Shown one piece after another: positions 26,082 through 60,390 of a stretch of DNA of 64,000 bases. The notes under the pieces are model-generated. The model worked only from the letters and a program-made list of their open reading frames with translations. It was not told the DNA's origin and made no database searches. Numbering within the stretch: position 1 is the stretch's first letter; every line of letters begins with the position of its first letter. The translations under genes were made by a program, and so were the position numbers. Source of the stretch: Lepidodermella squamata (taxonomy: Eukaryota; Animalia; Gastrotricha). Where the stretch lies: assembly GCA_047495785.1 (NCBI GenBank), contig JBLDXI010000057.1, positions 171,583 through 235,582 on the forward strand. The letters are read 5' to 3'.

Positions 26082-26105
26082 GGGTTAGGGTTAGGGTTAG
26101 GGTTA
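26082..26105 (+). repeat. Telomeric tract (GGGTTA)4, proximal boundary of the telomere-added region
   Basis: Read directly. No intact host gene is recognisable distal to it. Confidence 0.9.
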
Positions 26106-29088
26106 TTGGTAATAGTTTAATACAGACGAGCTGCAAACCGGGGCCTCTCGTTTTACCGAGAGTCAAACCGGGCCCTACCATTACTCCATCTGTTCCGTGA
26201 TTTCCGTGATCAGCGGACCCTATTTTACATATTCGTTGCGATTTATCGAAACTTTTTCGTTGACCATACATGCTTTTCGACCATATTTTCTTGATAATAC
26301 TATTTCCATGCGATTAATCGGCAATTGACGAAGATCCGAGAGATTATGAATTATTTTGAAATGCCAAAATTGAAAATCTCAATTTCGAAATAGATAATTT
26401 AAATTCGCTCCTAATCCTTTATTGTCGACAGCCGTCATGAGCCGACTCGATATTTGTCATCAGCCGACTTTACTTATTAATTTTTCACCAATTGGCTAAG
26501 AAGAATCCGACAAGTTGAGGTAAAATTTGAAAGGTCAGCCGCGACCAGATCGAGCTCAATATAGGTAATTTTCGATCGATCTGGAACCTTTTCCCTTCAC
26601 CGTACATGGTTTTCAACCACGTAATCGTCATCAGCGGACCTGATAGCACGATTCCCGTTTATCTTATTTTTCTTTCAAAGGTCCCGTCGCAATCCATCGA
26701 TTCAGATAATCAGCTAGTGCGATTCGTACTGCTTTCTCCTTATTCCTTACCATCAGCATCTGCGATGATCACAAAAGGCTTTTATTGAATTTGATAATCA
26801 CAAGAATTTTAATTTTACTCACCCCCGCCGATTCCTGTAATATTCATTTTACTTGACATCACCTTCCGGGCCTTGATCAATCCAGGTAAAGACATCCTAT
26901 TTCCACTCAACTTCTTTGCGATCGGATACGCTGATCGTGTTGGCACCGCTCTGACGGCTTGTTCTTCCACGACACTTGCAAAAACATACTTGGATAAAAG
27001 TTTTCCGACAAATTGTTCACAAATTACGCAATACAGGCGTCGGTCTTGAGCTTGCTATTCTTTTCAGCTTGTTGGCCATCTAACGACTTGTGCACACAGT
27101 AAGTATTTTTCTCGAGAATATTGTATGAGCTATAACGATTTTTTATCAGTTACGGCGCGCCATGTACTACCGCTACTCCAAGCAGGCATCAATCTACGTC
27201 TGCTTTCGGCAGAATCAATAGAAATCAGGCGAAAGCTGCTGAAGCGAATGCTGCTCATGACATGCAATGCGCTGCCTGATTCAATTCCTCGCCAACTTAT
27301 GAAATTTTTTTATAAGACTTCATTAAACAACTAAAAAAGGAATGATTATCTTCGTTAGGAGTGAACGAATTCTAATATAAATAAACAGTAGTTTTAATTA
27401 AATTACAAAAATCAGGCAAATGATTTTTAATTTAATAAAATTCAAGGACGACCGCGCAAGTTTTTTCCGCGCGCGCGCGCGCCATTTTCAGTTTGTTGGG
27501 TTTAGGTCTCGAGCAACGCGTGAGGCGTGAGTTAGAAACGAAAGACCTGCATGTACGCAGTAAGCTCTTTACTTATCTTGAAACAAGTCATTTGCGTAGG
27601 AGTGTTTCACTCTCACAGTACCAATCTATGCAAATAGCATCCTGACTGCGAGATTCTGTCTTTGTCAAGTTGCAAGATCTAATGCATCTAATGCCATTAC
27701 TGCGTGACATATCAGCTCATCAGGAGATCGTTCTACTAACTTCTCAACTTCTCTTCTCATCTTTAGATCTAGAGCTACCGCCAGCAAGCGAATGCCAGAT
27801 AAACTACTACTGCTCTTGAGTACCATCCTTTGATTACTAAAATTGAGTTCTCAGTGTGAACCTCTCTCAAGAACTTCTCTTCTCAATCTTAGATGACTCT
27901 AACTAAGATCTCCGTGGAGGATGCTTACGTATGAACGTATGAATATATTAGTAACGCCCCATTAGAGCCAAGTTATATCTTATCCTCAAAGAATAAACCT
28001 CAGTCCGGTGGTCCACTGAGATCATAACTCTATAACTCATATAGTGAATAAACCAATATGTGATATCTGAGACGCTTGGATGCTTCGAGCTTATTAAGAG
28101 TGGACCATTTAAGCAGTATCTACCTATAACCGAGGTCATTATTATATCCTTGAATGACCTTCTGAGTTCCTTCTGGATATCAAGTAACAATTTCACTTGG
28201 CAGGTTCAATGAAGCACCTCCTTCGATTCAATCGTAACTCTACTTACTCATCTCTAATCTCTAATCTCTAAGCAATGAACTGGCCTATGCAGTAGAATAG
28301 CAATTTCCTGCATTGCTAAATATTGTTGAGATAGTTTAGATTTTAGATTACCTAATGTTCTGATGTTCACCTTACTAAGAACTGAACGCTGAACTCAAAA
28401 TGGGCGCGTCTTGATAAGTCTTTATAAGACTCCCGTTCTTCATACTCATTTAATTAGTATGAATTATTTTCCTCAAATCGTCTGTTCTTTTCAATTATCC
28501 ATGGTCTAGATATTCTTGGAGTTTACCTTGCTTAACTTCTTCTGTGCATACTTGAGCCTCCGAGCCCAAAATTCATGTAATGATTTTCAACTTTGATTAG
28601 ACTTTCTTATGGTAAAAAAAATGATGGAGCCGAGAGACGTTCTCTCGAAATTTAAGTAAAGTATCTTCGTTAATCAATGATACTGTGACTTTACCCGAGA
28701 AGATAAGAAAAGCTCAATACGAAGAATGATGACCGTGAGGTAACTTAATAAGAAAGAGTTTGGCAGTACAAGAAATGGCCTAATTTTTAGGGGCGATACG
28801 TTTAATACGTGCCAGGCGAAGCCAGGCGTGCTGAAGATCGACTGCTAAACGGAAAAGCTTGCGCGGAATCAATCAAAATTTGAGAACTGCCAAAACGCCG
28901 TGTTTTAAAGTCTTTTTTCTAACGAAGGGCGATGGTGCCGCTGAATATGACTTATTTCCCTATGGGTTGTGGCTTAATTGTGGACTCTTTAATGTCTGCA
29001 TGTCATTAATTTGGGATAAATAAAATGAAAACCCTCTTGAAGATTGAGTAATTTTTATTTAATTTTCGAAATGGTGTTAATGATACGA

Positions 29089-29118
29089 GGCGCGCAGAGC
29101 GCGCCCGTCTTTTCTAGT
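29089..29118 (+). mobile_element. Helitron-like 3' terminus
   Basis: GC-rich hairpin GGCGCGC-AGA-GCGCGCC followed 8 nt later by CTAG|T. Further ATATCTAGTTACTA ends occur at about 29260 and 29296. The 5' end was not identified. Confidence 0.5.
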
Positions 29119-30129
29119 TACTGCAATAAATAGTGATGTATCCCTCTAGCCAGGGCGATAACAATGATGCAAAAAATAATTGGCGCGTGGCTCTATTTAA
29201 ATCGCGTGCATCATATGTTTGAGTCGCATGATTTGTAAACACATAAGGTACCCGAGGTGATATCTAGTTACTAAAAATAGCTGAGGTCAGGGCGATATCT
29301 AGTTACTAAAAATAGGTCATATTAAGAAGATGGTCGCAACATTGAAGAAATGGTTTTACTGTAAAAAATCGCTCTGAGATATCGTCCTGGTGAGCTAATA
29401 AGAAACTTCAACGAAAATAAAGGGAATAAATGTGAGGGGGACTATGGGTTCCCCGGATGGGCAGATAGAATTGGGTAAACACGATAAAGTAATTAAAAGT
29501 TGGACCTTAGGATTTCAAGATAGGACCTAATTAATTAAACCTCAGGGTGATAACTTTTTAGGTTTTCAGACAGGATTCTCCGTATAATGAGATGGTGATA
29601 ACTTTTTCATTTTTTAGTCAGGAATCGCATGTTTCTGTGACTTTGACTTTGCCAAAATAAGTGAAGATAACTTTTTCAATTTTAAGCCGGAAAACTCATT
29701 CTTTCACTTGCCGTAGTGTCTGTATGTATGTTTGATTTCACATTATACGAATAAGATAGTTTTGCTACGGCAGCTACGGCAGCGCTACGGTGAGTGCTAT
29801 TAGGTAGCAGTACGGTACGCAAGCTCGTGCTACGGTGCTACGGTGAGTCCTAACAGCGCGCAAGCACACCCCAATATTAAATTCATGCGCGTTAAAAGCG
29901 GGGCAATCGGCTCTGATATTGATAAAAACATATTATAATAAATTGGAAATGATAATATATACACCTATACTGAAGTTAATTAATTCATATCCCTGTGTCT
30001 TATAGGCAATGTTACTAAGAAATATGTAACGCAGACCACCAATAAATCGGCATCTCTCTCTAAAAACTAAAAAAATTAATAGTGGCCTTCATCGCCCGCG
30101 TGACTATATTCCGCGCGCCGGCTTCATCA

Positions 30130-30171
30130 GGGTTAGGGTTAGGGTTAGGGTTAGGGTTAGGGTTAGGGTTA
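30130..30171 (+). repeat. Telomeric tract (GGGTTA)7
   Basis: Read directly. It merges into the internal telomere-like tract of family A. Confidence 0.97.
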
Positions 30172-31121
30172 GTAGGGTTAGTACTACGGTCCTCCGGTTC
30201 AATATATTGCAAATTTTCAAGCAAAACTTTCCACCCCGTGACCAAGTTGTCACGGAGGTTCGTGCTGGTCATTGAGGCGCAGGCTTGACGCCACGCGTTG
30301 ACGAATTCTTCACGCGGTTCGCCGAGGTTGATGCCGCGGGCCTTGCGGATGACCGTAACCGAGCTGCCTTGACTGCAGACGCTGTTGAAGGCGCGAGCGG
30401 TGTAGAGCGGTAGCGAGTCGGGGTCGCAGTAACGGAACGCTTGCGACGCGTCCTTGTAGGCAAAGTAGGCTGCACCTGCGTGAGCCCAGCCGGAGCGGAG
30501 GCGAAGCGAGGTGACGGTGGCGGCGGCGAAACTGTCGCGTTCTGCAACGACTTTCGGGTCGACGAGCGAGTCTGTGGGAAAGAATTTGTTCATGCCATTA
30601 ATAAAATTTCTTTCATGTGGCGTGTAGCCGCCGCTGTTAACAGCAGTGCTAATGCGCGCCCGAATAATAAAATGATTAATAAATGATGCAAGCTTGGCCT
30701 GATATCGCTCGAGGATATCGTGACGGTGCTGTTGCTCGAGCCGTTGACGACGGTTAGAGGGCGGTGGTGACGCGTTCCTTGGAGCACGATTGCTCGGAGC
30801 GGGCGGACGCTGCTCTCGCCATGAGCGGTCGCGATAGCGGTCTTCTCGGTCTTGAGGACGGTCTTCGCGGTAGTAATGGCGGTCGTCGCGGTAGCGATGA
30901 CGGTCTTCGCCACGGTGACGGTGTTGTTGTCGATGTTGATCGTCTTGTTCGCGGTAACGCGATTGAGACGGCGTCGGTGGTTGACGACGGCGACCGGCTG
31001 TTGATGTCGAATTGTGGTAGACATAACGGAAGCCGCCAATGTAAGCGCGCTTCGCCGGATCGTTGTTGGCCGTGGTGAACCCGTTGTAATTATTTGCAAC
31101 AAAGCGATTGTGATTTGACAT
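30160..31121 (-). pseudogene. 3'-truncated copy of family A ORF1 running into telomeric repeats
   Basis: Matches the first ~320 aa of ORF 33826-35931, then reads (NP)n from CCCTAA repeats. Confidence 0.9.
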
Positions 31122-31143
31122 TTATCAAGATTTATTTATACTT

Positions 31144-31177
31144 TCAACTAACGCGTTTCAAATTTCATCAGAGTTGA
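31144..31177 (-). ncRNA. Minimal type I hammerhead ribozyme (family A, copy 1)
   Basis: UCAACU-CUGAUGA-AAUUU-GAAA-CGCG-UU/AGUUGA: 6-bp stem I, intact core, vestigial stem II, palindromic stem III (AACGCGUU). Confidence 0.85.
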
Positions 31178-32153
31178 GTGTGAAAACAGAACGATTCGTC
31201 GTTGTATTTAACATAGCGAAGCTGCGCCTACTTGGTCCAGGTAAGATCGTGTTAGGCGCAGCCTCTTAGCGCAACAGCTGTACATTAATTAACAATAATC
31301 TGTGTGTAACGAGGCGTTGACTAGGTGTGGCGCGGCAGATGGCGAAAACAGGTGTGCGCCGAGGTGCTGTAATCCCTAATCCCTAATCCCTCGCAGGTGC
31401 TCGGGTGATCACGAGCGGATTAACAGAAGGGAGCGAGAACCGATAATCATTAAGCTGTAGTTAAGTCCTGATGACTGCCGGCGTTGAGAACTAGTCGGAA
31501 AGAGGTTTGACGGACGTAACAAATCGATAGCGAAGAAAAAATCCGGCGTGACCATGGGGCGCAAAAGTAGGCAATTTATCAAAAACTTGTAGAAGTGCAA
31601 CAGTTGCAGCCGAGGTGTGTTTCTAGATGTAAGAGACCACGGAGAGCTCAAAAATCGAGGTCCCAGACTCACACGAGCTGGCGTTTGGAAGTAAACATCA
31701 AAATACAAAAATATTTTCGGTTTTTCCCGGATTTCGTGAAAACTAAGTCGAAAATCAAAATTCGAAGATCGGAGCAAAAAACTACATCATATGACACATC
31801 CAAATATGTTAATCATTAAAACGTGGTCATACTTTCATATTAGTGAGCTCGCAGTTTTTGCCGTTTTACGCGAAAACGGTGAGGATTGGCGATCAAACAA
31901 CAGTAACGTGACCCATATGTTTAGAACAGACCACGCGGAATCGATTGGAACTATTTCCCGGGAGAGTAGGTGTCACGGTTAACGAGATAATCGACTTTTA
32001 CGAAAATAAATTTTGGTAAAGTGAGCGGAAGGGCGCGTAAGAGCGCACAAAATTAATTTCAGTGACTATTCACACGTTTCGCAACATTACAACATTATTA
32101 CAGATCAATTGAGCGAAAGATTTTTGAGACGAAAAACTTTGAGCCAAAGCACG

Positions 32154-33893
32154 CTAACAGTCTTTAGTGCGGCAGAGCTGCTTGACCAGCGACGGGCCGA
32201 GGTGTGTGACGACGCGATGCCGGTGCCGTTTGGCGACGTCGAGTAGTGGCTGCAGACCGCGAACGAACTTGGTTTCGTGCTCCGGCCGCCAGTCACGATC
32301 GACCGGTCGCGAGTCAGCACGGTGTCGTAGAAACGGCCAGTCGAGGCCGGCGCAGCCGTCGACAACGCTGCGGCAGATTGCGAAGACGTCCGCGTCGTGA
32401 TAGCCGTACTTGCTGGCGGAGGCGGCGAGACTGAACACGGCCGAGGCCAGGTCCTGTGTGTTGTTACAAATTCGAACAAAATTAAGTAAACGACCAGAAA
32501 TAGCTGCACGTAAGGTGGAAAGAGGGTGATTAGAATCTGCGTGCAATAAAGGCAGCGCATTCATAGGCTTAAAGTAAACCCCTGTTCGAATTGAACCGTC
32601 TTCAAACTTCTGCATTCGCACGTCGAGCACGTTTGCACAGTCGTTGCTGATGTCGATTTCCAGTTTGATGCGAGGGTGCAGCGCGCTGTAGCCATTGCCC
32701 AGGTTGACGGCGGCTTCGTGGCTGGTAGCGACCGCGAAAATGTCGTCTCGGTAGCGTTTAAACAGTAGGAGGCCCTCGGAGCGGGCGACGAGGTCGCGTT
32801 CGAGAACGAAGAGAAAGGCGTCGGCGACGACGGGCGCGGTGTTTGACCCCATCGGGATGCCGTGCACTTGCCGATAACGAGCGCCTGCAAACAGAAAAAT
32901 ATTGAATTTAAGCGTGATTTTTAATATTTCGACAACAAGATGGCGTTCTGCTTGAGACCCGATACTGTTCTCGCGCAGTAGTAGCTCGATGGCGGCGATG
33001 CCTTCGTCGATCGGGACGTTGGTGTAGAGGTCGCTGACGTCGGCGGTGAAGAATGTAGCGTCGAGACCGCTTGTGTCGATTGACCGTACCGCTGATAACA
33101 GGTCGATAGTAGAGATCGCACACGTCGTCATGAAGTAATTCAGCGGTTTACAGAAGGCGGCGGCGACCTTGTCTGCGGCTGCGAGCGCGGTACCTAGGCA
33201 GTCGACGATCGGGCGAATCTTCGGTAGACCATCGACGTCGTTCGGTTTATGCATTTTCGGTAAGAAGTAGATGTACCGGTCACGCGTTGGCACGAGGTCG
33301 AGACCGCGGAGCAGCTTGCGTTGCGCCGCGGTACCTGAGGCGTTGATTCGCTCGACCAGAGACTTCATTGCTTCCAGCCCGGCGGTTGACTCGTCTTCAG
33401 TGGCGTTGACGTAGTTGGCGGTTGACAGATGCTTCGTTGCCATTTGGTTGTAGTCTTCTTTCTTGAGATAGACCATGGCCGAGCCCTTGTCCGACTTCTT
33501 AAAGACGCCGTTGTCGCGGAGCGCCTTGAGTCGTCGCAGCTGCGGGTCGTCGTTGAGCGGGCCGATTGTGAGCGTTCGGGCAGGCTGAGCGTGACGGATG
33601 ACCACTTGGCCGTTGATGCCTATGATAGGCCCTACGAAGCGTTTCGAGAACGGTACCGCTGGGACCGAGACGTCGTAGCGGTGATCGGCCCGCGGTTGGA
33701 CGGTTGCACCTAGAAGATCTGACATAGTTTTTAGTGAGGCAAATTTTTCTTTTTTAGTAAAATTTATAATTTTAAGGCCCCGCTCGAGTGCCTGTTTCTC
33801 GGCGGGCGCCAAACTTCCTGTCAGATCAATGACTGACGGTAGGGAACAGCGGTGAAGGCTGAACGCCGTACCATTCTGGACAAGGCACGACAT
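32154..33893 (-). CDS. Family A Penelope-like reverse transcriptase without GIY-YIG endonuclease
   Basis: YFLPKMHKP, IRPIV, TADVSDLYTNVP, QVHGIPMGS, RYRDDIF, and thumb GVYFKP..SNHP. The ORF stops shortly after the thumb. Confidence 0.93.
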   Translation of the reverse strand: MSCLVQNGTAFSLHRCSLPSVIDLTGSLAPAEKQALERGLKIINFTKKEKFASLKTMSDLLGATVQPRADHRYDVSVPAVPFSKRFVGPIIGINGQVVIRHAQPARTLTIGPLNDDPQLRRLKALRDNGVFKKSDKGSAMVYLKKEDYNQMATKHLSTANYVNATEDESTAGLEAMKSLVERINASGTAAQRKLLRGLDLVPTRDRYIYFLPKMHKPNDVDGLPKIRPIVDCLGTALAAADKVAAAFCKPLNYFMTTCAISTIDLLSAVRSIDTSGLDATFFTADVSDLYTNVPIDEGIAAIELLLRENSIGSQAERHLVVEILKITLKFNIFLFAGARYRQVHGIPMGSNTAPVVADAFLFVLERDLVARSEGLLLFKRYRDDIFAVATSHEAAVNLGNGYSALHPRIKLEIDISNDCANVLDVRMQKFEDGSIRTGVYFKPMNALPLLHADSNHPLSTLRAAISGRLLNFVRICNNTQDLASAVFSLAASASKYGYHDADVFAICRSVVDGCAGLDWPFLRHRADSRPVDRDWRPEHETKFVRGLQPLLDVAKRHRHRVVTHLGPSLVKQLCRTKDC

Positions 33894-35931
33894 GCCCGTC
33901 AGCCCTAGCGACGTTATAAAACGTGATCGCGGCTTCTCGATGCCTCCCTTCCTTGTCGCCGTGCTTTAAGGCGATGTGTTCGCATAGTGCGTTGATCGAA
34001 CCACGGTGAGGTCTGTGAAGACACACGGTGCCGTTCTTCTTTTTCTTGCCGCAGTACCAGAAGTGTTCTAATTCGTTCCATTCGACGCCGATTTCCGGGT
34101 CTTCTTTCTTCGTTTTCTGCCACCATTCGCGTCGGTACAAGGCCGTGATGACTCCGCGTTTTTGAGCGAACGTTTTCGGCGAGACTTGTTGCGCGTTGGT
34201 GTTTGAGCGTTTCGACTGACCGGGCGCGTTGTTGTAAACTTTCGATGCGGACGCGGCGTTTTCACCGTACATCTTCTTCGCGGGTACGGCCTTGGGCTTC
34301 GCTTTCGGAGCGACGGTCGAGATTGCTTGTTGTTTCGCGGTGGGCGGACGAGCTGTAGGCGACGGCTCCTTCTCTTCTTCTTGACGCCTCCGCTTCGACG
34401 ACACTGAAGGCGGAGGCGCGACCGGGTGGGTCACGCGTTGAGAGTTCGGCGTGAGCCCGAAGAAATCCGACGCGACCATGATAACATTTTCTCTAGGAAA
34501 AAGTGGGTTATTATTAATTAAAGCTTCGGCCGCTGTAGCGGCAGCCAGAAGCGCTGTGTCGCTCGCGGTATCGATGACAGGTGACGAGATCTTCCTCGGT
34601 GCGGCGGGCTGAACCGATTGTTCAGAGGCGCGTGTTGTGGTCGGAGTGATCGAATCGGTGTTGTTGTTGTTCGATTCGACGACGATGACGGGTGAGGCGT
34701 TGCGTGCGCTGGCCACGGCTGGCGGTGAGGTGGTAGGCGTGCGCGTTGTCGGAGCCTTGGCGACTGGCGCGGCGATAGGTTCGCTGTTCTTGACGATGGG
34801 TGAGGCGACGGCGGCGGCTGCTGGAGGCGCGGCCTTCGGTGTGACGTCGACGACGGAGATGCCTTCGCCGGTTTCTTCTTCGATCACTTGCATCGGAGAC
34901 GCGGGCTGTGCCGCGGGCGGTGCTTGAACCTCTGTACCCCTGGGAGGTACGCGGACCTGAGAAAGAAAAGGGTTAGGGTTAGTAGGGTTAGTACTACGGT
35001 CCTCCGGTTCAATATATTGCAAATTTTCAAGCAAAACTTTCCACCCCGTGACCAAGTTGTCACGGAGGTTCGTGCTGGTCATTGAGGCGCAGGCTTGACG
35101 CCACGCGTTGACGAATTCTTCACGCGGTTCGCCGAGGTTGATGCCGCGGGCCTTGCGGATGACCGTAACCGAGCTGCCTTGACTGCAGACGCTGTTGAAG
35201 GCGCGAGCGGTGTAGAGCGGTAGCGAGTCGGGGTCGCAGTAACGGAACGCTTGCGACGCGTCCTTGTAGGCAAAGTAGGCTGCACCTGCGTGAGCCCAGC
35301 CGGAGCGGAGGCGAAGCGAGGTGACGGTGGCGGCGGCGAAACTGTCGCGTTCTGCAACGACTTTCGGGTCGACGAGCGAGTCTGTGGGAAAGAATTTGTT
35401 CATGCCATTAATAAAATTTCTTTCATGTGGCGTGTAGCCGCCGCTGTTAACAGCAGTGCTAATGCGCGCCCGAATAATAAAATGATTAATAAATGATGCA
35501 AGCTTGGCCTGATATCGCTCGAGGATATCGTGACGGTGCTGTTGCTCGAGCCGTTGACGACGGTTAGAGGGCGGTGGTGACGCGTTCCTTGGAGCACGAT
35601 TGCTCGGAGCGGGCGGACGCTGCTCTCGCCATGAGCGGTCGCGATAGCGGTCTTCTCGGTCTTGAGGACGGTCTTCGCGGTAGTAATGGCGGTCGTCGCG
35701 GTAGCGATGACGGTCTTCGCCACGGTGACGGTGTTGTTGTCGATGTTGATCGTCTTGTTCGCGGTAACGCGATTGAGACGGCGTCGGTGGTTGACGACGG
35801 CGACCGGCTGTTGATGTCGAATTGTGGTAGACATAACGGAAGCCGCCAATGTAAGCGCGCTTCGCCGGATCGTTGTTGGCCGTGGTGAACCCGTTGTAAT
35901 TATTTGCAACAAAGCGATTGTGATTTGACAT
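33826..35931 (-). CDS. Family A ORF1 (701 aa): R/D-rich N-terminus, helical domain, P/A/T-rich linker, C-terminal C2H2-like zinc finger
   Basis: Continuous ORF containing YCGKKKKNGTVC...LCEHIALKH; overlaps the RT ORF in the +1 frame. Confidence 0.85.
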   Translation of the reverse strand: MSNHNRFVANNYNGFTTANNDPAKRAYIGGFRYVYHNSTSTAGRRRQPPTPSQSRYREQDDQHRQQHRHRGEDRHRYRDDRHYYREDRPQDREDRYRDRSWREQRPPAPSNRAPRNASPPPSNRRQRLEQQHRHDILERYQAKLASFINHFIIRARISTAVNSGGYTPHERNFINGMNKFFPTDSLVDPKVVAERDSFAAATVTSLRLRSGWAHAGAAYFAYKDASQAFRYCDPDSLPLYTARAFNSVCSQGSSVTVIRKARGINLGEPREEFVNAWRQACASMTSTNLRDNLVTGWKVLLENLQYIEPEDRSTNPTNPNPFLSQVRVPPRGTEVQAPPAAQPASPMQVIEEETGEGISVVDVTPKAAPPAAAAVASPIVKNSEPIAAPVAKAPTTRTPTTSPPAVASARNASPVIVVESNNNNTDSITPTTTRASEQSVQPAAPRKISSPVIDTASDTALLAAATAAEALINNNPLFPRENVIMVASDFFGLTPNSQRVTHPVAPPPSVSSKRRRQEEEKEPSPTARPPTAKQQAISTVAPKAKPKAVPAKKMYGENAASASKVYNNAPGQSKRSNTNAQQVSPKTFAQKRGVITALYRREWWQKTKKEDPEIGVEWNELEHFWYCGKKKKNGTVCLHRPHRGSINALCEHIALKHGDKEGRHREAAITFYNVARADGHVVPCPEWYGVQPSPLFPTVSH

Positions 35932-35953
35932 TTATCAAGATTTATTTATACTT

Positions 35954-35987
35954 TCAACTAACGCGTTTCAAATTTCATCAGAGTTGA
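35954..35987 (-). ncRNA. Minimal type I hammerhead ribozyme (family A, copy 2)
   Basis: Same sequence as 31144-31177; ends 22 nt upstream of the ORF1 ATG. Confidence 0.85.
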
Positions 35988-36198
35988 GTGTGAAAACAGA
36001 ACGATTCGTCGTTGTATTTAACATAGCGAAGCTGCGCCTACTTGGTCCAGGTAAGATCGTGTTAGGCGCAGCCTCTTAGCGCAACAGCTGTACATTAATT
36101 AACAATAATCTGTGTGTAACGAGGCGTTGACTAGGTGTGGCGCGGCAGATGGCGAAAACAGGTGTGCGCCGAGGTGCTGTAATCCCTAATCCCTAATC

Positions 36199-36219
36199 GG
36201 GTTAGGGTTAGGGTTAGGG

Positions 36220-36260
<41 letters not shown>

Positions 36261-36285
36261 GGTTAGGGTTAGGGTTGGGTTAGGT
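36199..36285 (+). repeat. Telomeric tract capping A and priming B
   Basis: About 14 TTAGGG units with a few variants. Confidence 0.97.
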
Positions 36286-36289
36286 TAAT

Positions 36290-36331
36290 TACCAGACGGG
36301 AAGCCTAAGCAACCCCGGCATAGAAGCTCTA
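36290..36331 (-). other. Conserved structured element adjacent to the telomere-priming tract (B1)
   Basis: TACCAGACRGGWAGCCTAAGCAACCCCGGCA..RGCTCTA is shared by B, C and D (also at 42463, 47187, 53076, 60594, 62387) while the flanks diverge. Confidence 0.75.
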
Positions 36332-36575
36332 GCAATCCCTTTCACTCTTTTGACGGTAATAAAAACGTTTTGCGTACCTGTCAATCCGTTGATTAGCACC
36401 AGTTGAGATTATTTCAAACAATTTCAATAATTTCCTAAGAAAGAGATTAAATATAATTGAATGTTTGAACATGAATAAGTGTTCTCAAGTCGAGGGTCAC
36501 TGTAGAACCATAAATCCAGGTTCAATCAAAGGAGACCTTGAATGAACCGGGATCATAAATGTAGAATTGAAAATG

Positions 36576-37130
36576 TGGTAGAACCATGTCTTAAGGTTAA
36601 ACCAGAAGGAAGAAGAAGACCTTGGTTGAACCAAAACCATAAAGTTGAGGTTGCAAATACGGGTAGAACCATAACTTAAGGTTGAACCGAAAAGGAAACC
36701 TTAATTGAACCAAAACTATGAAGTTGAGGTTGCAGATATGGGTAGAACCGTAATTTTAAGGTTAAACCGAAAAGGAAACCTTAACTGAACCAGAACTATA
36801 TAGTTAAGGTTGCAAATATGGGTAGAACCATAACTTAAGGTTAAACCGAGAAGGAAACCTTAATTGAACCAAAACTATATAGTTAAGGTTGCAAATATGG
36901 GTAGAACCATAACTTAAGGTTAAACCGAGAAGGAAACCTTAATTGAACCAAAACCATAAAGTTGAGGTTGTAAATATGGGTAAAACCATAATTTAAGGTT
37001 AAACCGAAAAGGAAACCTTAAACTGAACCAGAACTATAAAGTTGAGGTTGCAAATATGGGTAGAACCATAACTTAAGGTTAAACCGAGAAGGAAACCTTA
37101 ATTGAACCAAAACTGTGAAGTTAAGGTTAC
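36576..37130. repeat. About 80-bp tandem repeat (~7 units) in the family B UTR; second copy at about 42749-43303
   Basis: Repeated unit GGTAGAACCATAACTTAAGGTTAAACCGAAAAGGAAACCTTAATTGAACC... Confidence 0.9.
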
Positions 37131-37177
37131 CGTTCCGTTTTTCAAAGGAGAAAAAGGAGAAAAAACCGTAACAATAC

Positions 37178-37319
37178 GCCACCCATGAAGGGGAGCAAAG
37201 AATCAAAGGCCACCCGTATAGGGGAGCGGAAGGAGGCACGCCACCCGTAAAGGGGAGCAACAAAGCAATAGCCACCCATGAAGGGGAGCAATAATTAAAA
37301 GCCACCCGTAAAGGGGAGC
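37178..37319 (-). repeat. Short-hairpin array (GCCACCC-N4-GGGGAGC type) x5, family B
   Basis: About 31-nt periodicity; copy in B2 at +6173. Confidence 0.85.
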
Positions 37320-37420
37320 ATACGGAGAAAGAGCTCAACGTAAAGGTGAGCAAACTGGAAACAACGCCCAGCCGGGTTACCAGACAGTATTGGTAAGAAC
37401 AGGAGGTCAAAAGCACGCAA

Positions 37421-37474
37421 CGCCCATATTAGTCAGACCGGTTTCGCCTGTGGGCAGCAGGCTCGTCAGTGACT
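37421..37474 (-). ncRNA. Type I hammerhead ribozyme with putative loop-II pseudoknot (B1)
   Basis: AGUCA-CUGACGA-GCCUG(CUGCCCA)CAGGC-GAAA-CCGG-UC/UGACU..UGGGCG. Confidence 0.93.
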
Positions 37475-37526
37475 TTGTTGCGAAAATTAAATTTTGCGAA
37501 ATGACGAAAAGTCAGATCTTAAAGCC

Positions 37527-37582
37527 TTTATAAAGGGCTGTTATCTGGACGCCATTTTGAATTTTCAAAATTTGGCGCGAAA
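37527..37582 (-). promoter_or_regulatory. Putative Pol II promoter (E2F-like site, YY1-like site, TATA) upstream of the hammerhead, B1
   Basis: On the - strand: TTTCGCGCCAAA, AAAATGGCG, TTTATAAA. The same order and similar spacing occur in C and D. Confidence 0.6.
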
Positions 37583-38190
37583 GTTTGAGATTTATTTTCC
37601 CAAAATAATGTTATTTCCTGATTGGTAATCATGTGAGGGGTATAACTGGAGTGTTTCACGTAAAAAATGTTCAATTAATTGCCGCATGTTTTTCAAGGTC
37701 GTTGCCATTTGTGGTATCTAGTAAGTTTGCCTAACATGTTTGGTATCAGGTGACCGGTTACGGTTGTGGGTCCAAGTCCAGGAAAACCAAAACCTTGGTT
37801 TTTTGGGTTCTGTTATGGTTTTTATACATTTAAGGTTCATAGGTTTTTGGTGCAGTAACCCAAACTTTAACGTTAAGGTTATGGTTGACGTTATGGTGTT
37901 TTTCAGAATTATGGTTCTAGTTCCGTATCACACCAATTCCCAGTTTACGGTTCGATTTCTCATCTGTAATGTGTCACCAGGGTTGGGTTGCAACCATAAT
38001 TTTCGGTTTTTTTCGGTTGTTGGAGTTGTATGCCGTTTTGCAGGTTCGGTTTTTATGGTTTCACAAGTCGATTTTTTACAAAAGCGATCCACATTTTATT
38101 TCAGAGTTCCTTACCAGGTGGTTTAGAGAAAAACAAAAACACACCATAGCATCGTTACAAACATATTCACTGGAGGTAAGGTTGAGTCAC

Positions 38191-47060: not shown

Positions 47061-47092
47061 GGTTAGGGTTAGGGTTAGGGTTAGGGTTAGGG

Positions 47093-47133
<41 letters not shown>

Positions 47134-47182
47134 GGTTAGGGTTAGGGTTAGGGTTAGGGTTAGGGTTAGGGTTAGGTTAGGG
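47060..47182 (+). repeat. Telomeric tract capping B and priming C
   Basis: About 20 TTAGGG units. Confidence 0.97.
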
Positions 47183-47714: not shown

Positions 47715-47948
47715 GCCACCCCAGTTGCGGGAAGCGTGTTTCCAAATGCCACCCATTAGAGGGAAGCCAACCGATTCTGCCACCCGTTGGAGGGAAGCTA
47801 CAAATATGATGCCACCCGTTAAAGGGAAGCCACGAATGTAATGCCACCCGTTGAAGGGAAGCCGAAAAGGTTACGCCACCCTCGTAAGGGAAGCCGACAA
47901 CAAAATGCCACCCATTAGAGGGAAGCTAAGCCACCCGTGGAGGGAAGC
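47715..47948 (-). repeat. Short-hairpin array (GCCACCC-N5/7-GGGAAGC) x8, family C
   Basis: About 32-nt periodicity; copy in C2 at +5889. Confidence 0.87.
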
Positions 47949-48017
47949 ACCCGATAAATTAGTTGCGGAGCGGTATGCGGTGTAATAACCTAATGTAATA
48001 CGAGAGATAGTAAGCAA

Positions 48018-48070
48018 CGCCCATAGTGCCAGACCGGTTTCGCCTGTGGGCGGCAGGCTCGTCAGTGACT
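48018..48070 (-). ncRNA. Hammerhead ribozyme (C1)
   Basis: GUCA-CUGACGA-GCCUG(CCGCCCA)CAGGC-GAAA-CCGG-UC/UGGC..UGGGCG. Confidence 0.92.
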
Positions 48071-48124
48071 CTAGTTGCTTAAAACAAAATCCGCTCAAAT
48101 GATGAAAATGTTCGAAAATAAGGC

Positions 48125-48190
48125 TTTTTATACTGCGGTCCCTTCCGCCATTTTGGAAAAAATCGTGGCACGTGGGTTTTGGCGCGAAAA
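48125..48190 (-). promoter_or_regulatory. Putative promoter (E2F-like, E-box, YY1-like, TATA), C1
   Basis: On the - strand: TTTTCGCGCCAAA, CACGTG, AAAATGGCGG, TATAAAAA. Confidence 0.62.
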
Positions 48191-48804
48191 TTTTTCTAGA
48201 AACTGATGTTATTTCCATAACCCAGTGCTAGTGGTTAGCTTATTTCCAACGGTTGAAACGTTTTGGAATTTATTAGCCGCAGGTGATTTCAAGGTCGTTT
48301 AGCCGCAGGTGATAGACTTAGAGTTAAGGTTTCATACTTATGGTTCGAGTTAAGGTTTCATACTTATGGTTCGCCTAGTCTTAGTGTTGGCGGTCTTCTG
48401 ACCACAAGTTAAATAACCGGCCGAATAGTCGTTTTAGGGTTGTCCTCGATAAGATAAGGTTCTTTTCAGTTCCGCTATTTGTTCAAGTCCCAAAACCTTA
48501 AGTTCTGGTTTCACACCGTAAGGTGGATTTAAGGTTACAGATATTCGTTAGTTTATTTCCACCTTCCTGAAGTGGATTTAAGGTTAGGGTCCTGTAGTTC
48601 GATTTCAATTTCCACGTTGATTCAGGTTGCCCAACCTTAAGTTGTTACTTAAGGTTACGGTTTCTGATTATCTTCGGACCCATTTGTTTCTGTTTCATTC
48701 TGCCTGGAGTTAAGGTTCACACGGTTGTAAAAGTCGTGAATTAGTTCAACAATGTGTTTTATTTCAGAAACTTCATCACTCACACTCACTTGACACAAAT
48801 CACC

Positions 48805-49982
48805 TCAAAAGTCACCCTTCTTCAGGATCTCAGCGCGGAGACGAAGACGTTCTTCATCCAGTGCTTGGGCCTGGACTAGCTGGTCTTTCTCGTGGTTCTT
48901 CAAGAAGTGTCCAAGTAGACCGTCCGACCTAGTGCAAGTGAACTTGCAGGATCCAATTCGGCAGAGGATGATCGATCCAGGCTTTTTGCCCGGGACCCGG
49001 GGAGCTTGCTCCACCCGTTCCCAGACAAGGGCGCCCTCGTAGTTCTCGCGCAGTTTTTCCCATGCAAGACTTTCGGCGACAGATCTAGCGGAACCTCCCG
49101 CAAGTCTCCGACCAGAAGTCGTGGGTCCACGGGCTGGAGTGCTGGCGATAGAGAATGAACAACCACCGGTCGATGACGACGAGCGTTCTGTGACAAGGTA
49201 AAGTTGAAGTTAAGGTTGCAATCTCCTTTAAAGAAATATCTTACCTTCCAAAGACGGAAGTGGTCGCTTGCGATTCGCCCTGTTGACTGTAGGCTCCGAT
49301 GTCGAAGCCATGGACACATTGTAGCGGGGTGCTGGCGATGAGGCTGCCGAACTCGTGGCGCTGCTGAATTCCAGTGGGGTTGAGGTTGCGCCTCCTCTCA
49401 GAGGTCGTCCGAACATATCGATATCTATGAAAAGATCGCGATCGAGGCGGACAACACAATCCTTAGTCGACAATCTCGGGTCTGGAGTTCCCAGGGTCGC
49501 ATCCGGCTGAAGTGTTGATTCCGAGGATGAGCTTTCACTATCTGAGCGTGAAAGCGCATCACGTGTCTCTTCGGGCAGCTCGTCCGCTGACATTTCAATA
49601 GCATCCTCGGTAGCCGATCTCACCGGAGAATCGGTTATCACGATGACGCCGCCCTGCTCCCGTTCCGGTGCTGCGTTGCTGGTAGCGGTTCCACCGTTAT
49701 CCTGGTCAGGCTTGGGATCTGCGTTGACTTGCTCGGTATCGTCGTCCAGCAGGTCAAGGGCTTCCTGGAGGGTAGCCGAGTCCGCGGCAGAGAAGCTACC
49801 CAAGCCGCTGAAAGTAGAAGCGCAAATTTCGGGACCATTGCTCGTCGATGGCAGCTCGAGCCTGTGACCAATGGTGACGGGCGAGGGGCACGGAGCCCTC
49901 CAGGCCGACTCAGGAGCCCAGCGACCGGTATCGTAGGTTGTCCCGAAGTTGAAGAATCTCCAACTCGGTGAAGCCGTGTCAG
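48805..49982 (-). CDS. Family C downstream exons (49245-49982, 48805-49187): disordered region plus C2H2 zinc finger
   Basis: Intron 49188-49244 (GTAAGA..CAG) restores the frame; GGSAR and the zinc finger CRIGSC-x12-HFLKNH align with family B; begins at a polypyrimidine TTTCCAG acceptor. Confidence 0.82.
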
Positions 49983-52986: not shown

Positions 52987-53906
52987 CTAAGAGAATATTA
53001 AACAAATTCATTAGTGAGCTGAACTAACATCGCACGTACGGCACAAGCAAATTGTTAGGGTTAGTTTAGGGAAAATACCAGACAGGTAGCCTAAGCAACC
53101 CCGGCAAAGAGGCTCTAATGCAGTTCAACCCGAATGAATTTTTTAAAAATAAACGTGAGCTTACCATGTTCGTTGCTTCTTCCGTGAGAGTAAAGGCCGA
53201 TAATACCCAAAGATTTTAACAGAATCTAAAATACAGAAACATACAAATTGTTAGTTACAAGTTAAGGTTACCAGAACCTTAAATAATTTGCTTTTCAATA
53301 GATTGTCAACGTGGACACTAACCATAAGTGATTATAGGTATGTCTCGAAAAGGATAGGGTGTGAACCTTAAGTGGTTTACCCTATACCGGCTATTCCGTA
53401 TTTAAACATCTCAAAGTTGAGGTCGAGGCCGAATAGGATTTATGGTTCGCAACCATATCCGGTTACATAGTTCAATCCGACCATAAGCATATGAACCTTA
53501 ACTTAGGTTAAGCTTTAGAGACTACTTCCTTAGTTCAGGGCTCTTGCTGAACCCTAAGTTATTTAGGGTCAGGATACCTTAAGTCAACCTGAGCAGCCCA
53601 GGTGCCACCCCAGTTGCGGGAAGCGTGTTTCCAAATGCCACCCATTAGAGGGAAGCCAACCGATTCTGCCACCCGTTGGAGGGAAGCTACAAATATGATG
53701 CCACCCGTTAAAGGGAAGCCACGAATGTAATGCCACCCGTTGAAGGGAAGCCGAAAAGGTTACGCCACCCTCGTAAGGGAAGCCGACAACAAAATGCCAC
53801 CCATTAGAGGGAAGCTAAGCCACCCGTGGAGGGAAGCACCCGATAAATTAGTTGCGGAGCGGTATGCGGTGTAATAACCTAATGTAATACGAGAGATAGT
53901 AAGCAA

Positions 53907-53959
53907 CGCCCATAGTGCCAGACCGGTTTCGCCTGTGGGCGGCAGGCTCGTCAGTGACT
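53907..53959 (-). ncRNA. Hammerhead ribozyme (C2)
   Basis: Same sequence as in C1. Confidence 0.92.
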
Positions 53960-54693
53960 CTAGTTGCTTAAAACAAAATCCGCTCAAATGATGAAAATGT
54001 TCGAAAATAAGGCTTTTTATACTGCGGTCCCTTCCGCCATTTTGGAAAAAATCGTGGCACGTGGGTTTTGGCGCGAAAATTTTTCTAGAAACTGATGTTA
54101 TTTCCATAACCCAGTGCTAGTGGTTAGCTTATTTCCAACGGTTGAAACGTTTTGGAATTTATTAGCCGCAGGTGATTTCAAGGTCGTTTAGCCGCAGGTG
54201 ATAGACTTAGAGTTAAGGTTTCATACTTATGGTTCGAGTTAAGGTTTCATACTTATGGTTCGCCTAGTCTTAGTGTTGGCGGTCTTCTGACCACAAGTTA
54301 AATAACCGGCCGAATAGTCGTTTTAGGGTTGTCCTCGATAAGATAAGGTTCTTTTCAGTTCCGCTATTTGTTCAAGTCCCAAAACCTTAAGTTCTGGTTT
54401 CACACCGTAAGGTGGATTTAAGGTTACAGATATTCGTTAGTTTATTTCCACCTTCCTGAAGTGGATTTAAGGTTAGGGTCCTGTAGTTCGATTTCAATTT
54501 CCACGTTGATTCAGGTTGCCCAACCTTAAGTTGTTACTTAAGGTTACGGTTTCTGATTATCTTCGGACCCATTTGTTTCTGTTTCATTCTGCCTGGAGTT
54601 AAGGTTCACACGGTTGTAAAAGTCGTGAATTAGTTCAACAATGTGTTTTATTTCAGAAACTTCATCACTCACACTCACTTGACACAAATCACC

Positions 54694-55871
54694 TCAAAAG
54701 TCACCCTTCTTCAGGATCTCAGCGCGGAGACGAAGACGTTCTTCATCCAGTGCTTGGGCCTGGACTAGCTGGTCTTTCTCGTGGTTCTTCAAGAAGTGTC
54801 CAAGTAGACCGTCCGACCTAGTGCAAGTGAACTTGCAGGATCCAATTCGGCAGAGGATGATCGATCCAGGCTTTTTGCCCGGGACCCGGGGAGCTTGCTC
54901 CACCCGTTCCCAGACAAGGGCGCCCTCGTAGTTCTCGCGCAGTTTTTCCCATGCAAGACTTTCGGCGACAGATCTAGCGGAACCTCCCGCAAGTCTCCGA
55001 CCAGAAGTCGTGGGTCCACGGGCTGGAGTGCTGGCGATAGAGAATGAACAACCACCGGTCGATGACGACGAGCGTTCTGTGACAAGGTAAAGTTGAAGTT
55101 AAGGTTGCAATCTCCTTTAAAGAAATATCTTACCTTCCAAAGACGGAAGTGGTCGCTTGCGATTCGCCCTGTTGACTGTAGGCTCCGATGTCGAAGCCAT
55201 GGACACATTGTAGCGGGGTGCTGGCGATGAGGCTGCCGAACTCGTGGCGCTGCTGAATTCCAGTGGGGTTGAGGTTGCGCCTCCTCTCAGAGGTCGTCCG
55301 AACATATCGATATCTATGAAAAGATCGCGATCGAGGCGGACAACACAATCCTTAGTCGACAATCTCGGGTCTGGAGTTCCCAGGGTCGCATCCGGCTGAA
55401 GTGTTGATTCCGAGGATGAGCTTTCACTATCTGAGCGTGAAAGCGCATCACGTGTCTCTTCGGGCAGCTCGTCCGCTGACATTTCAATAGCATCCTCGGT
55501 AGCCGATCTCACCGGAGAATCGGTTATCACGATGACGCCGCCCTGCTCCCGTTCCGGTGCTGCGTTGCTGGTAGCGGTTCCACCGTTATCCTGGTCAGGC
55601 TTGGGATCTGCGTTGACTTGCTCGGTATCGTCGTCCAGCAGGTCAAGGGCTTCCTGGAGGGTAGCCGAGTCCGCGGCAGAGAAGCTACCCAAGCCGCTGA
55701 AAGTAGAAGCGCAAATTTCGGGACCATTGCTCGTCGATGGCAGCTCGAGCCTGTGACCAATGGTGACGGGCGAGGGGCACGGAGCCCTCCAGGCCGACTC
55801 AGGAGCCCAGCGACCGGTATCGTAGGTTGTCCCGAAGTTGAAGAATCTCCAACTCGGTGAAGCCGTGTCAG
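54694..55871 (-). CDS. Family C downstream ZnF exons, copy in C2
   Basis: Duplicate of 48805-49982 at +5889. Confidence 0.75.
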
Positions 55872-58721: not shown

Positions 58722-60390
58722 ACGAGCTGCCCGAAGAGACACGTGATGCGCTTTCACGCTCAGATAGTGAAAGCTCATCCTCGGAATCAACACTTCAGCC
58801 GGATGCGACCCTGGGAACTCCAGACCCGAGATTGTCGACTAAGGATTGTGTTGTCCGCCTCGATCGCGATCTTTTCATAGATATCGATATGTTCGGACGA
58901 CCTCTGAGAGGAGGCGCAACCTCAACCCCACTGGAATTCAGCAGCGCCACGAGTTCGGCAGCCTCATCGCCAGCACCCCGCTACAATGTGTCCATGGCTT
59001 CGACATCGGAGCCTACAGTCAACAGGGCGAATCGCAAGCGACCACTTCCGTCTTTGGAAGGTAAGATATTTCTTTAAAGGAGATTGCAACCTTAACTTCA
59101 ACTTTACCTTGTCACAGAACGCTCGTCGTCATCGACCGGTGGTTGTTCATTCTCTATCGCCAGCACTCCAGCCCGTGGACCCACGACTTCTGGTCGGAGA
59201 CTTGCGGGAGGTTCCGCTAGATCTGTCGCCGAAAGTCTTGCATGGGAAAAACTGCGCGAGAACTACGAGGGCGCCCTTGTCTGGGAACGGGTGGAGCAAG
59301 CTCCCCGGGTCCCGGGCAAAAAGCCTGGATCGATCATCCTCTGCCGAATTGGATCCTGCAAGTTCACTTGCACTAGGTCGGACGGTCTACTTGGACACTT
59401 CTTGAAGAACCACGAGAAAGACCAGCTAGTCCAGGCCCAAGCACTGGATGAAGAACGTCTTCGTCTCCGCGCTGAGATCCTGAAGAAGGGTGACTTTTGA
59501 GGTGATTTGTGTCAAGTGAGTGTGAGTGATGAAGTTTCTGAAATAAAACACATTGTTGAACTAATTCACGACTTTTACAACCGTGTGAACCTTAACTCCA
59601 GGCAGAATGAAACAGAAACAAATGGGTCCGAAGATAATCAGAAACCGTAACCTTAAGTAACAACTTAAGGTTGGGCAACCTGAATCAACGTGGAAATTGA
59701 AATCGAACTACAGGACCCTAACCTTAAATCCACTTCAGGAAGGTGGAAATAAACTAACGAATATCTGTAACCTTAAATCCACCTTACGGTGTGAAACCAG
59801 AACTTAAGGTTTTGGGACTTGAACAAATAGCGGAACTGAAAAGAACCTTATCTTATCGAGGACAACCCTAAAACGACTATTCGGCCGGTTATTTAACTTG
59901 TGGTCAGAAGACCGCCAACACTAAGACTAGGCGAACCATAAGTATGAAACCTTAACTCGAACCATAAGTATGAAACCTTAACTCTAAGTCTATCACCTGC
60001 GGCTAAACGACCTTGAAATCACCTGCGGCTAATAAATTCCAAAACGTTTCAACCGTTGGAAATAAGCTAACCACTAGCACTGGGTTATGGAAATAACATC
60101 AGTTTCTAGAAAAATTTTCGCGCCAAAACCCACGTGCCACGATTTTTTCCAAAATGGCGGAAGGGACCGCAGTATAAAAAGCCTTATTTTCGAACATTTT
60201 CATCATTTGAGCGGATTTTGTTTTAAGCAACTAGAGTCACTGACGAGCCTGCCGCCCACAGGCGAAACCGGTCTGGCACTATGGGCGTTGCTTACTATCT
60301 CTCGTATTACATTAGGTTATTACACCGCATACCGCTCCGCAACTAATTTATCGGGTGCTTCCCTCCACGGGTGGCTTAGCTTCCCTCTAA
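58722..60390 (+). mobile_element. Inverted fragment of family C (reverse complement of about 47915-49583)
   Basis: The same ORFs appear on the opposite strand; includes the ZnF exon, promoter block and hammerhead; capped by telomeric repeats. Confidence 0.93.
60235..60287 (+). ncRNA. Hammerhead ribozyme in the inverted C fragment
   Basis: AGTCACTGACGAGCCTGCCGCCCACAGGCGAAACCGGTCTGGCACTATGGGCG. Confidence 0.92.

Follow-up and report, generated by a model that had tools for sequence, protein, structure and literature searches.

Endonuclease (EN)-deficient Penelope-like elements (PLEs) are known from the telomeres of bdelloid rotifers as Athena elements and Terminons (Gladyshev & Arkhipova 2007 and Arkhipova et al. 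2017, as summarised in PMC8557442 and PMC6431247). According to these summaries, such elements have two ORFs, a 3' end that faces the centromere, telomere-capped 5' ends, a head-to-tail arrangement in chains and a hammerhead motif. Their attachment end carries telomeric repeats in reverse complement, described as a non-coding tract immediately 3' of the 3'-terminal hammerhead. Similarly, Coprina (Coprina-1_Alen, PMC13159263) is a telomeric EN-less PLE of a fungal host that lies amid TTAGGG tracts, usually has one ORF and shows ORFs flanked by direct repeats, as in a more-than-unit copy; these repeats measure 63-422 bp and are not described as coding. In PAc, a Poseidon element of Anolis that has a GIY-YIG nuclease, the start of reverse transcription is internal to the RNA and maps to an AC-rich site, 111-118 nt into the ORF, that shares no homology with the target (Frangieh et al. 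2024, PMC11167929), and a circle that templates more-than-unit cDNA has been proposed for PLEs (PMC4209133). Telomere-complementary 3' tracts, copying beyond one unit, RNA circles as a proposal and initiation of reverse transcription within an ORF (Frangieh 2024) are thus already published for PLEs. New in the element described here is that a telomere-complementary attachment tract lies in frame within the element's own ORF1, a twist on the known extension of chromosome ends.

The locus was analysed in a 64,000-nt stretch of Lepidodermella squamata DNA (hereafter the window), in which TTAGGG dimers occur 69 times versus 0.19 expected. An insert of an element family that we call A lies between two G-strand telomere tracts with its 3' end centromere-ward (Table 1), and the presence of telomere repeats on the centromere side of its tract fits an element that was added onto a pre-existing chromosome end. 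Family A shares with the Athena elements and Terminons the lack of an EN, the two ORFs, the telomeric position and orientation, the capped 5' ends, the head-to-tail chains, the reverse-complement repeats at the attachment (3') end (14 nt in register, and coding) and a hammerhead-like motif. By contrast, its tract is in frame inside ORF1, with the hammerhead-like motif 989 nt upstream, and its repeat is TTAGGG instead of TGTGGG or TGAGGG. The direct repeats of 1230 nt also exceed those of Coprina. Two further families in the window, B and C, whose reverse transcriptases (RTs) are 30-32% identical to that of family A, meet telomere repeats exactly at an internal telomere-like tract of their own and form copies of 1.75 and about 2.2 units, respectively. 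Both the tract and the 5' truncations, which telomere repeats cap, are particular to each family, and the units inside any one insert are identical or nearly so.

Table 1. Coordinates of family A features and flanking telomere tracts (positions within the window).
Feature	Position	Strand	Basis
Proximal telomere tract to which family A was added; TCAGGG followed by TTAGGG repeats	30127..30158	+	sequence
Family A insert, 6040 nt = 1.256 units of an EN-free PLE	30159..36198	-	self-comparison
Tract copy at 3' terminus, telomere-complementary; final 14 nt (sense CTAACCCTAACCCT) in telomere-repeat register	30159..30182	-	sequence
Downstream repeat (pseudo-LTR): 5'UTR, hammerhead-like motif, ORF1 codons 1-321	30159..31388	-	100% identical to 34969-36198
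Hammerhead-like motif, second copy	31144..31177	-	pattern search
Internal copy of G-rich motif (sense GGGATTA-type); 31388, inside the motif, is the equivalent of the insert 5' end 36198	31370..31391	-	sequence, repeat alignment
3' untranslated region, without EN ORF	31389..32153	-	ORF list, Pfam
ORF2, RT, 579 aa (RVT_1, DKG motif, YRDD); 68-nt overlap with ORF1	32154..33893	-	ORF list, Pfam
ORF1, 701 aa: helical N-domain, NPN tract in linker, long low-complexity stretch, C-terminal Cys/His zinc-finger-like motif	33826..35931	-	ORF translation, predicted structure
Internal telomere-complementary tract, in frame as TNPTNPNP; includes conserved core AACCCTAAC	34969..34992	-	sequence, relatives
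Hammerhead-like motif: 6-bp stem I, CUGAUGA, 5-nt loop, GAAA, palindrome CGCG, then UU	35954..35987	-	pattern search
Insert 5' end, within G-rich motif (sense GATTAGGGATTAGGGATTA)	36180..36198	-	sequence, repeat alignment
Distal telomere tract: caps family A and carries the next element (family B)	36199..36285	+	sequence

Classification of family A as an EN-free PLE is based on its coding sequence. ORF2 matches RVT_1 at E = 4e-7, and in an alignment of 15 RT sequences the DKG motif upstream of the RT core (D135 K136 G137) and the R382 D383 D384 of its YxDD box are invariant, as expected for a PLE-type RT. No GIY-YIG EN was found: ORF2 stops after the RT/thumb, and Pfam searches with ORF1, ORF2 and the sole ORF of the 3'UTR returned RVT_1 alone. 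Comparison of the ORF2 RT with PDB profiles gave generic RT matches only, all weak. For ORF1, neither Pfam nor the ESM Atlas feature search yielded a match that indicates function, and Foldseek matched its helical domain (model pLDDT 82) to nothing in the PDB, so that the N-terminal part remains a predicted helical domain without assigned function. Exact-protein look-ups found neither the ORF1 nor the ORF2 sequence on record, and metagenome scans with RT and ORF1 profiles gave no confirmed match. We provisionally place family A beside Athena and Coprina by these and the structural features.

Self-comparison of the window revealed that family A units follow each other head-to-tail with a period of 4810 nt and that 30159-31388 and 34969-36198 are 100% identical over 1230 nt, which is the layout of a partial tandem (pseudo-LTR). 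The match to the internal copy begins with the first tract base (30159), and (TTAGGG)n continues in register to its left; the initial annotation had rightly seen a junction that starts at the tract in mid-ORF, placing it one base off at 30160. The tract encodes TNPTNPNP, as had been read: its 24 nt, ACT AAC CCT ACT AAC CCT AAC CCT on the minus strand (34992-34969), specify ORF1 residues 314-321, about 960 nt into the gene. Two further early claims hold as well, namely that the insert is permuted relative to gene order, as the junction inside ORF1 indicates, and that ORF1 is intact only by virtue of 1.26-unit copying, since the sole complete copy is the one that spans the internal tract and unit joint and ORF1 is whole because copying ran past about 1.2 units. 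The 3'-terminal ORF1 copy (31121 to 30159) consists of codons 1-321 and then reads (NP)n through the telomere repeats (ORF 30060-31121); a protein word search with this truncated ORF1, aimed at products ending in (NP)n, found none. At the opposite end, the insert start at 36198 and the internal-repeat start at 31388 are one and the same unit position, and attempts to pair the G-rich motif there with telomerase, with the C-strand or with the tract gave no fitting scheme. Contig sequencing depth is about 2-3 times higher over the repeat than over the body, a measure too crude for a copy-length distribution.

Although the window holds one complete family A junction only, other copies also point to the tract. 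First, among the L. squamata reads a further family A copy gives way to unrelated DNA at the very same base (34970). Second, the contigs of two relatives (L006 and L008) end within the tract, and six contigs of relatives wrap around, as more-than-unit copies would. Third, the 9-nt core AACCCTAAC recurs, where ORF1 aligns, in ten related lineages whose RTs are 36-59% identical, with a single change in one of them (L007); it reads Asn-Pro-Asn in 9/9 lineages whose frame was checked, while the flanks are only about 50% identical. In seven of eight predicted folds the openness of the core ranks in the top 2-6% of the 9-mers in its own ±200 nt, and in the predicted ORF1 structure it falls into a low-confidence linker past the last helix (pLDDT below 50) that is probably disordered. 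We also considered the tract, a U-rich run and a CAG as a branch point and 3' splice site, and rejected this intron reading on finding no donor-like site on the sense strand and no conservation beyond L001. On the strength of the window junction, the second read junction, the two contig ends and the core kept in ten lineages, a dual role is supported in which the ORF1 tract would double as codons and as a fixed attachment (docking) site. The annotation had gone further and called the same stretch protein code and primer-binding site; of this, the code and the fixed attachment point stand, whereas priming itself is deduced from the junctions.

The explanation that we favour, with a probability of roughly 0.55 for the whole of it, is that family A extends chromosome ends from a linear template longer than one unit. 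The tract in the element RNA would pair with the telomeric 3' G-overhang, the element RT would then extend the paired overhang along this RNA, and telomerase would recap the new end afterwards. A minimal template would begin where the upstream repeat begins (36198), continue across ORF1, ORF2 and the 3'UTR and stop at the tract in the downstream repeat; copying of such a transcript would reproduce the 1.26-unit daughter. The initial annotation had held that the template must be circular or multimeric. Although a template of more than one unit is indeed required, a linear 1.26-unit transcript from a parent of the same shape is sufficient, with template jumping and copying at the DNA level as alternatives. 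A fixed 1.26-unit transcript leaves the copies of families B and C unexplained, and these show that templates or DNA arrays of at least two units occur. If transcription starts at the first base of the upstream repeat, the promoter would have to lie farther downstream, as is known for Penelope. Extension of the overhang would resemble the internal initiation observed in vitro with PAc, to judge by analogy: the genomic junction of family A sits at an internal ORF site of the PAc type, where the cDNA start is putative, and family A would share with PAc a start downstream of a hammerhead or hammerhead-like motif on RNA from tandem copies, and thereby a unit permuted with respect to the ORF. The two differ in the nuclease, absent from family A, and in the site, which in family A lies far deeper in the ORF and, unlike that of PAc, has its complement in the telomere overhang. 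The proposed pairing also recalls the telomerase RNA template, likewise a short internal C-rich stretch to which the G-overhang anneals and which a TERT-related RT copies; the family A tract includes CUAACCCUAAC, the template sequence of vertebrate telomerase. Unlike telomerase, family A copying would run on for 6 kb without a stop and reset at each repeat, and the family A RNA would also be a messenger. The docking explanation agrees with published PLE biology (PMC8557442, PMC6431247, PMC11167929, PMC4209133).

Priming at the same tract might instead take place on an RNA circle, for which the two hammerhead-like motifs would excise a unit-length RNA from a longer transcript, a host ligase would close it and reverse transcription would proceed as a rolling circle. 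The idea, which we regard as doubtful, draws on the hammerhead-like motif, detected by pattern alone: CUGANGA and GAAA boxes, helix I and a short palindromic helix III occur in the window and likewise in each of the ten related lineages that were examined, with a covarying stem I of 6-12 bp that differs in sequence by lineage and palindromes CGCG, CCGG, CUAG or UCUAGA. The motif looks like a minimal type I variant of the PLE hammerhead and is a putative ribozyme, of the dimer type by its palindromic stem III. Exactly two copies, 4810 nt apart, lie in the 1.26-unit insert, and a circle would suit the near-identity of units within inserts and the longer copies of families B and C, besides regaining length lost by 5' truncation. 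Such a circle has been proposed for PLEs (PMC4209133), and ribozyme-derived circles are known for retrozymes (PMC7761336), whose tandem units likewise have type I hammerheads of the dimer type; unlike family A, however, retrozymes do not encode proteins and are small. On the other hand, the motif has no helix II (the boxes are 3-5 nt apart, up to 6 in L009 and L010/L011), Rfam returned no family at the gathering score for the whole window and no hammerhead on 29500-38000 even at E = 10, and cleavage is putative. The insert 5' end also sits on a special motif, not at a random position, and for PAc the main substrate is unprocessed RNA and insertion is unaffected by ribozyme mutants (PMC11167929). 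The predicted cut is 28 nt ahead of the ORF1 AUG and 989 nt ahead of the tract, and in B, C and a 1.8-kb element of the window the motif is about 0.85-1.2 kb upstream of the tract, while the Terminon description has the hammerhead directly upstream (PMC6431247). Under the favoured linear-template explanation, the motif probably does not make the priming end and probably serves to process read-through or multimeric RNA or to aid ORF1 translation. About as tentative is a version in which the ORF1 tract acts as a telomerase-like template-alignment site on the mRNA, the overhang pairing internally without an RNA 3' end, and a ribozyme-cut, religated circle is copied repeatedly by the TERT-related RT.

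A seamless tandem could also result if unit-length linear RNAs were copied in succession, either by an RT that jumps from one 5' end to the next 3' end or in two back-to-back events. Non-LTR and group II RTs are known to jump end-to-end between templates, and the shared unit position of 36198 and 31388 is expected if RNAs begin there. We nevertheless find this improbable: an RNA ending just before that position would be without a telomere-complementary end, jumps usually add or lose bases whereas the family A joint is seamless, and the telomere junction at the ORF1 tract would be left unexplained. More improbable still is an event at the DNA level, in which strand invasion by a telomeric 3' overhang, into the 14-nt tract of a family A copy located on a different chromosome end, led to break-induced replication of that copy and of all DNA distal to it. 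This would give an identical-looking junction, and the chain of A, B, C and the 1.8-kb element does lie entirely distal to it. However, 14 nt is scant homology for invasion, conservation of the tract within the element extends across lineages that have their own RT, and tracts specific to each family, together with telomere-capped 5' truncations, are a signature of retrotransposition. Finally, that Asn-Pro-Asn is simply a protein motif at which the junction fell by chance can practically be dismissed: Asn-Pro repeats are common in disordered linkers, but this reading is already contradicted by the conservation of identical nucleotide spelling in nine lineages (p = 0.137 per lineage from codon usage, given NPN), a 24-nt target in a 4810-nt unit leaves about 0.5% for a random junction, and the site is shared by two contig ends and one further junction.

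How PLE reverse transcription starts and why PLEs insert in the form of more-than-unit tandems are still poorly understood, and initiation within an ORF comes so far from one in vitro system, with a site devoid of target homology. The family A lineage offers a natural case in which the putative initiation site is recognisable by sequence through its complementarity to the telomere overhang. With this site about 960 nt into the gene, a functional daughter can arise only by more-than-unit copying. The finding is also relevant to the proposed kinship of PLEs and telomerase. If the tentative reading of a circle with an alignment site were true, a single 9-nt stretch would be under joint coding and priming constraint, and the lineage would be a living intermediate between retrotransposon and telomerase.

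The tract of 24 telomere-complementary nucleotides (sense strand 34992-34969, ACT AAC CCT ACT AAC CCT AAC CCT) encodes TNPTNPNP, residues 314-321 of ORF1 of family A, an endonuclease (EN)-free Penelope-like element (PLE), as the initial annotation had read it. At 30159-30182 these 24 nt recur as the insert's telomere-proximal end, the final 14 of them continuing in register into telomere repeats. The junction thus falls at the tract in mid-ORF, as had been claimed, at 30159 instead of 30160. Telomere dimers matched the window 69 times versus 0.19 expected, and the GC-rich block between the second and third telomere tracts has its genes on the minus strand. Positions 34969-36198 and 30159-31388 are 100% identical across 1230 nt, which gives a period of 4810 nt and an insert (30159-36198, 6040 nt) of 1.256 units. 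In PLE terms family A is a pseudo-LTR (a repeat made by partial tandem), a body and a second pseudo-LTR, of 1230 nt each and holding ORF1 codons 1-321.

Features of family A and of neighbouring elements in the window
Feature	Position	Strand	Details
G-strand telomere repeats	26085; 30127-30168; 36199-36285; 47063-47177; 60400-60578	plus	
Insert 5' end	36198	minus	inside G-rich GGGATTA-type motif
5'UTR		minus	267 nt
Hammerhead-like motif	35987-35954	minus	28 nt ahead of AUG
ORF1	33826-35931	minus	701 aa
ORF2 (reverse transcriptase, RT)	32154-33893	minus	579 aa; RVT_1 match
3'UTR		minus	765 nt; no endonuclease ORF
Downstream repeat		minus	G-rich motif, 5'UTR, hammerhead-like motif, ORF1 codons 1-321; ends with the tract
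Hammerheads of B, C and the 1.8-kb element	37469; 43642; 48065; 53954; 61418; 63211	minus	
Hammerhead of the same kind	60240	plus	

Along ORF1 a helical N-domain is followed by the tract, then by a long stretch of low complexity and finally by a Cys/His motif; AlphaFold modelled the N-domain at pLDDT 82, with the tract in a low-confidence tail past the last helix (pLDDT below 50). The RT ORF shares 68 nt (33826-33893) with ORF1, read in another frame; in relatives the overlap is 4-52 nt or absent. The terminal ORF1 copy comprises codons 1-321 only, followed by telomere that reads as (NP)n. A unit-length copy from tract to tract would have split ORF1, and a whole ORF1 plus leader requires ~1.2 units, which bears out the earlier statement that an intact ORF1 depends on the 1.26 units. 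Since the telomere complement contains no stop codon in the Asn-Pro frame (30060-31121) and the terminal partial unit retains the full upstream region with the hammerhead-like motif, an ORF1 N-domain extended by (NP)n could be expressed from this unit. An intron reading of 34956-34992 (minus strand), where two UACUAAC followed by UUUUCUUUCUCAG resemble a branch point, polypyrimidine tract and 3' splice site (a feature common to L001, a contig of a relative), was rejected: no splice donor was found on the sense strand, and the resemblance therefore probably follows from the telomere sequence itself.

A word search with the family A RT returned 21 relatives at 27-62% identity, and eleven contigs (L001-L011) from ten lineages were compared, L010 and L011 encoding the same RT. 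A 9-nt core, AACCCTAAC, lies within ORF1 in nine of ten related lineages; the core of L007 is AACCCTACC. In the ORF1 alignment, which took in seven relatives, it falls where the conserved N-domain ends, and it is read as Asn-Pro-Asn in the window and in all eight frame-checked relatives (L009, whose ORF1 was uncalled, was left out). The 36 nt flanking the core are only ~50% identical, and the chance of NPN being spelled as in the core, given the codon usage of these same elements, is 0.137 per lineage. The core is also predicted to be unpaired, its openness placing it in the top 2-6% of the 9-mers within +/-200 nt in 7/8 lineages.

The L006 and L008 contigs terminate within the tract, as expected of an assembler at a fork where either ORF1 or telomere repeats can follow. 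L003, L004, L005, L007, L010 and L011 are self-wrapping, and L001, L002, L006 and L008 are permuted, ORF1 being divided between the two contig ends. Other family A copies had been expected to start at the tract, and in contigs of the one public run of this genome, to which the survey was limited, one further copy does so: at 34970 it abuts unrelated DNA. A variant lacking 3 nt of the tract is also common there. The window may derive from this very run, whose contigs therefore do not support the sequence independently; the 34970 junction is nonetheless distinct from the window's.

Families B (period 6173, 1.75 units, 6 differences between units in 4625 nt) and C (period 5889, 1 difference in 5665 nt, with a further 1.7-kb piece in inverted orientation), which lie distal to family A, meet telomere repeats exactly at their own internal telomere-like tracts upstream of the ORF. 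A fixed-tract rule thus holds for three families in the window, among which only A has its tract in coding sequence. The inverted piece at the distal end of C (58722-60394), a self-copy 99.9% identical to 47910-49583 and 53799-55472, corresponds to the inverted 5'-truncated arrangement described for PLEs. A telomere tract at 26085-26102 precedes ~4 kb without long ORFs (26082-30126) that end at family A's tract, with CTGATGA immediately after the telomere repeats at the minus-strand 5' end; this stretch is probably the innermost, protein-less member of the chain.

A hammerhead-like motif lies 5' of the ORF1 start in all lineages: stem I, CUGA(A/U)GA, a 3-6 nt loop, GAAA, a 4-6-nt palindrome, U, H and the complementary stem I strand. 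This stem spans 6-12 bp in the eight lineages measured and differs in sequence in each (L006 has one mismatch), at least 6 pairs being expected in random sequence with p = 0.002. With its palindrome, stem III belongs to the dimer type known from PLE hammerheads (PMC4209133, PMC7761336). Because helix II is absent from the motif of family A and relatives and Rfam gave no match for that of family A, its cleavage is putative only. The tract of family A lies 989 nt downstream of the motif. In B, C and the 1.8-kb element the hammerhead, ~0.85-1.2 kb upstream from each tract, is fuller, having a helix II of 5 bp (GCCUG/CAGGC) and CCGG as its palindrome; the interval is non-coding in these elements (in B partly a 79-nt satellite) and holds the ORF1 N-domain in A.

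The element's 3' end points towards the telomere repeats, which adjoin the tract on its centromeric side; this arrangement fits addition onto an existing G-overhang and does not suit healing of a break. We infer that the RNA tract would pair with the telomeric overhang, which the RT would then extend. The template must have been longer than one unit; the initial annotation went further in holding that it must be circular or multimeric, whereas a linear 1.26-unit transcript suffices. The simplest template would be such a transcript of a 1.26-unit parent, starting where the upstream repeat starts and reaching the tract in the downstream one; given a promoter downstream of the start, as Penelope is reported to have (PMC8557442), it would reproduce itself. 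Such a transcript would also account for a 5' end on a particular motif, since a random end would fall inside the 22-nt G-rich motif with a chance of ~0.5%. This GGGATTA-type motif (36180-36198 and 31370-31391), telomere G-strand-like with a 7-nt period on the sense strand and absent from relatives, may mark where transcription starts or the RT stops, or may be a binding site. A circle of RNA that the RT went round more than once is a live alternative to the linear transcript and better accounts for copies of at least two units and for regaining length lost through 5' truncation. Jumping between templates, or copying at the DNA level, is a further possibility.

EN-deficient PLEs join G-overhangs via reverse-complement telomeric repeats adjoining the hammerhead (PMC8557442, PMC6431247), and one telomeric Coprina element has direct repeats around its two ORFs (PMC13159263). 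PLE insertions are partial tandems, "more-than-unit copies" being required for further transposition, and one proposal for the template is an RNA circle made by ribozyme action (PMC4209133). The RT of the nuclease-bearing PAc initiates in vitro inside the RNA, at an AC-rich stem-loop 111-118 nt into the ORF, using RNA from tandem copies, with ribozyme cleavage dispensable (PMC11167929). With tandems, RNA circle and internal initiation already described or proposed, the initial inference repeats published ideas. For an in-frame telomere-complementary tract ~960 nt into ORF1 and ~1 kb from the hammerhead, read as Asn-Pro-Asn across deep divergence, we found no description in the literature covered, which leaves out the original Athena and Terminon descriptions. 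Conservation, junction, fold and model results together show that a translated stretch is also under nucleotide-level constraint, and the proposal that one stretch serves both as protein code and as docking site is well supported by inference from core conservation and the junctions.
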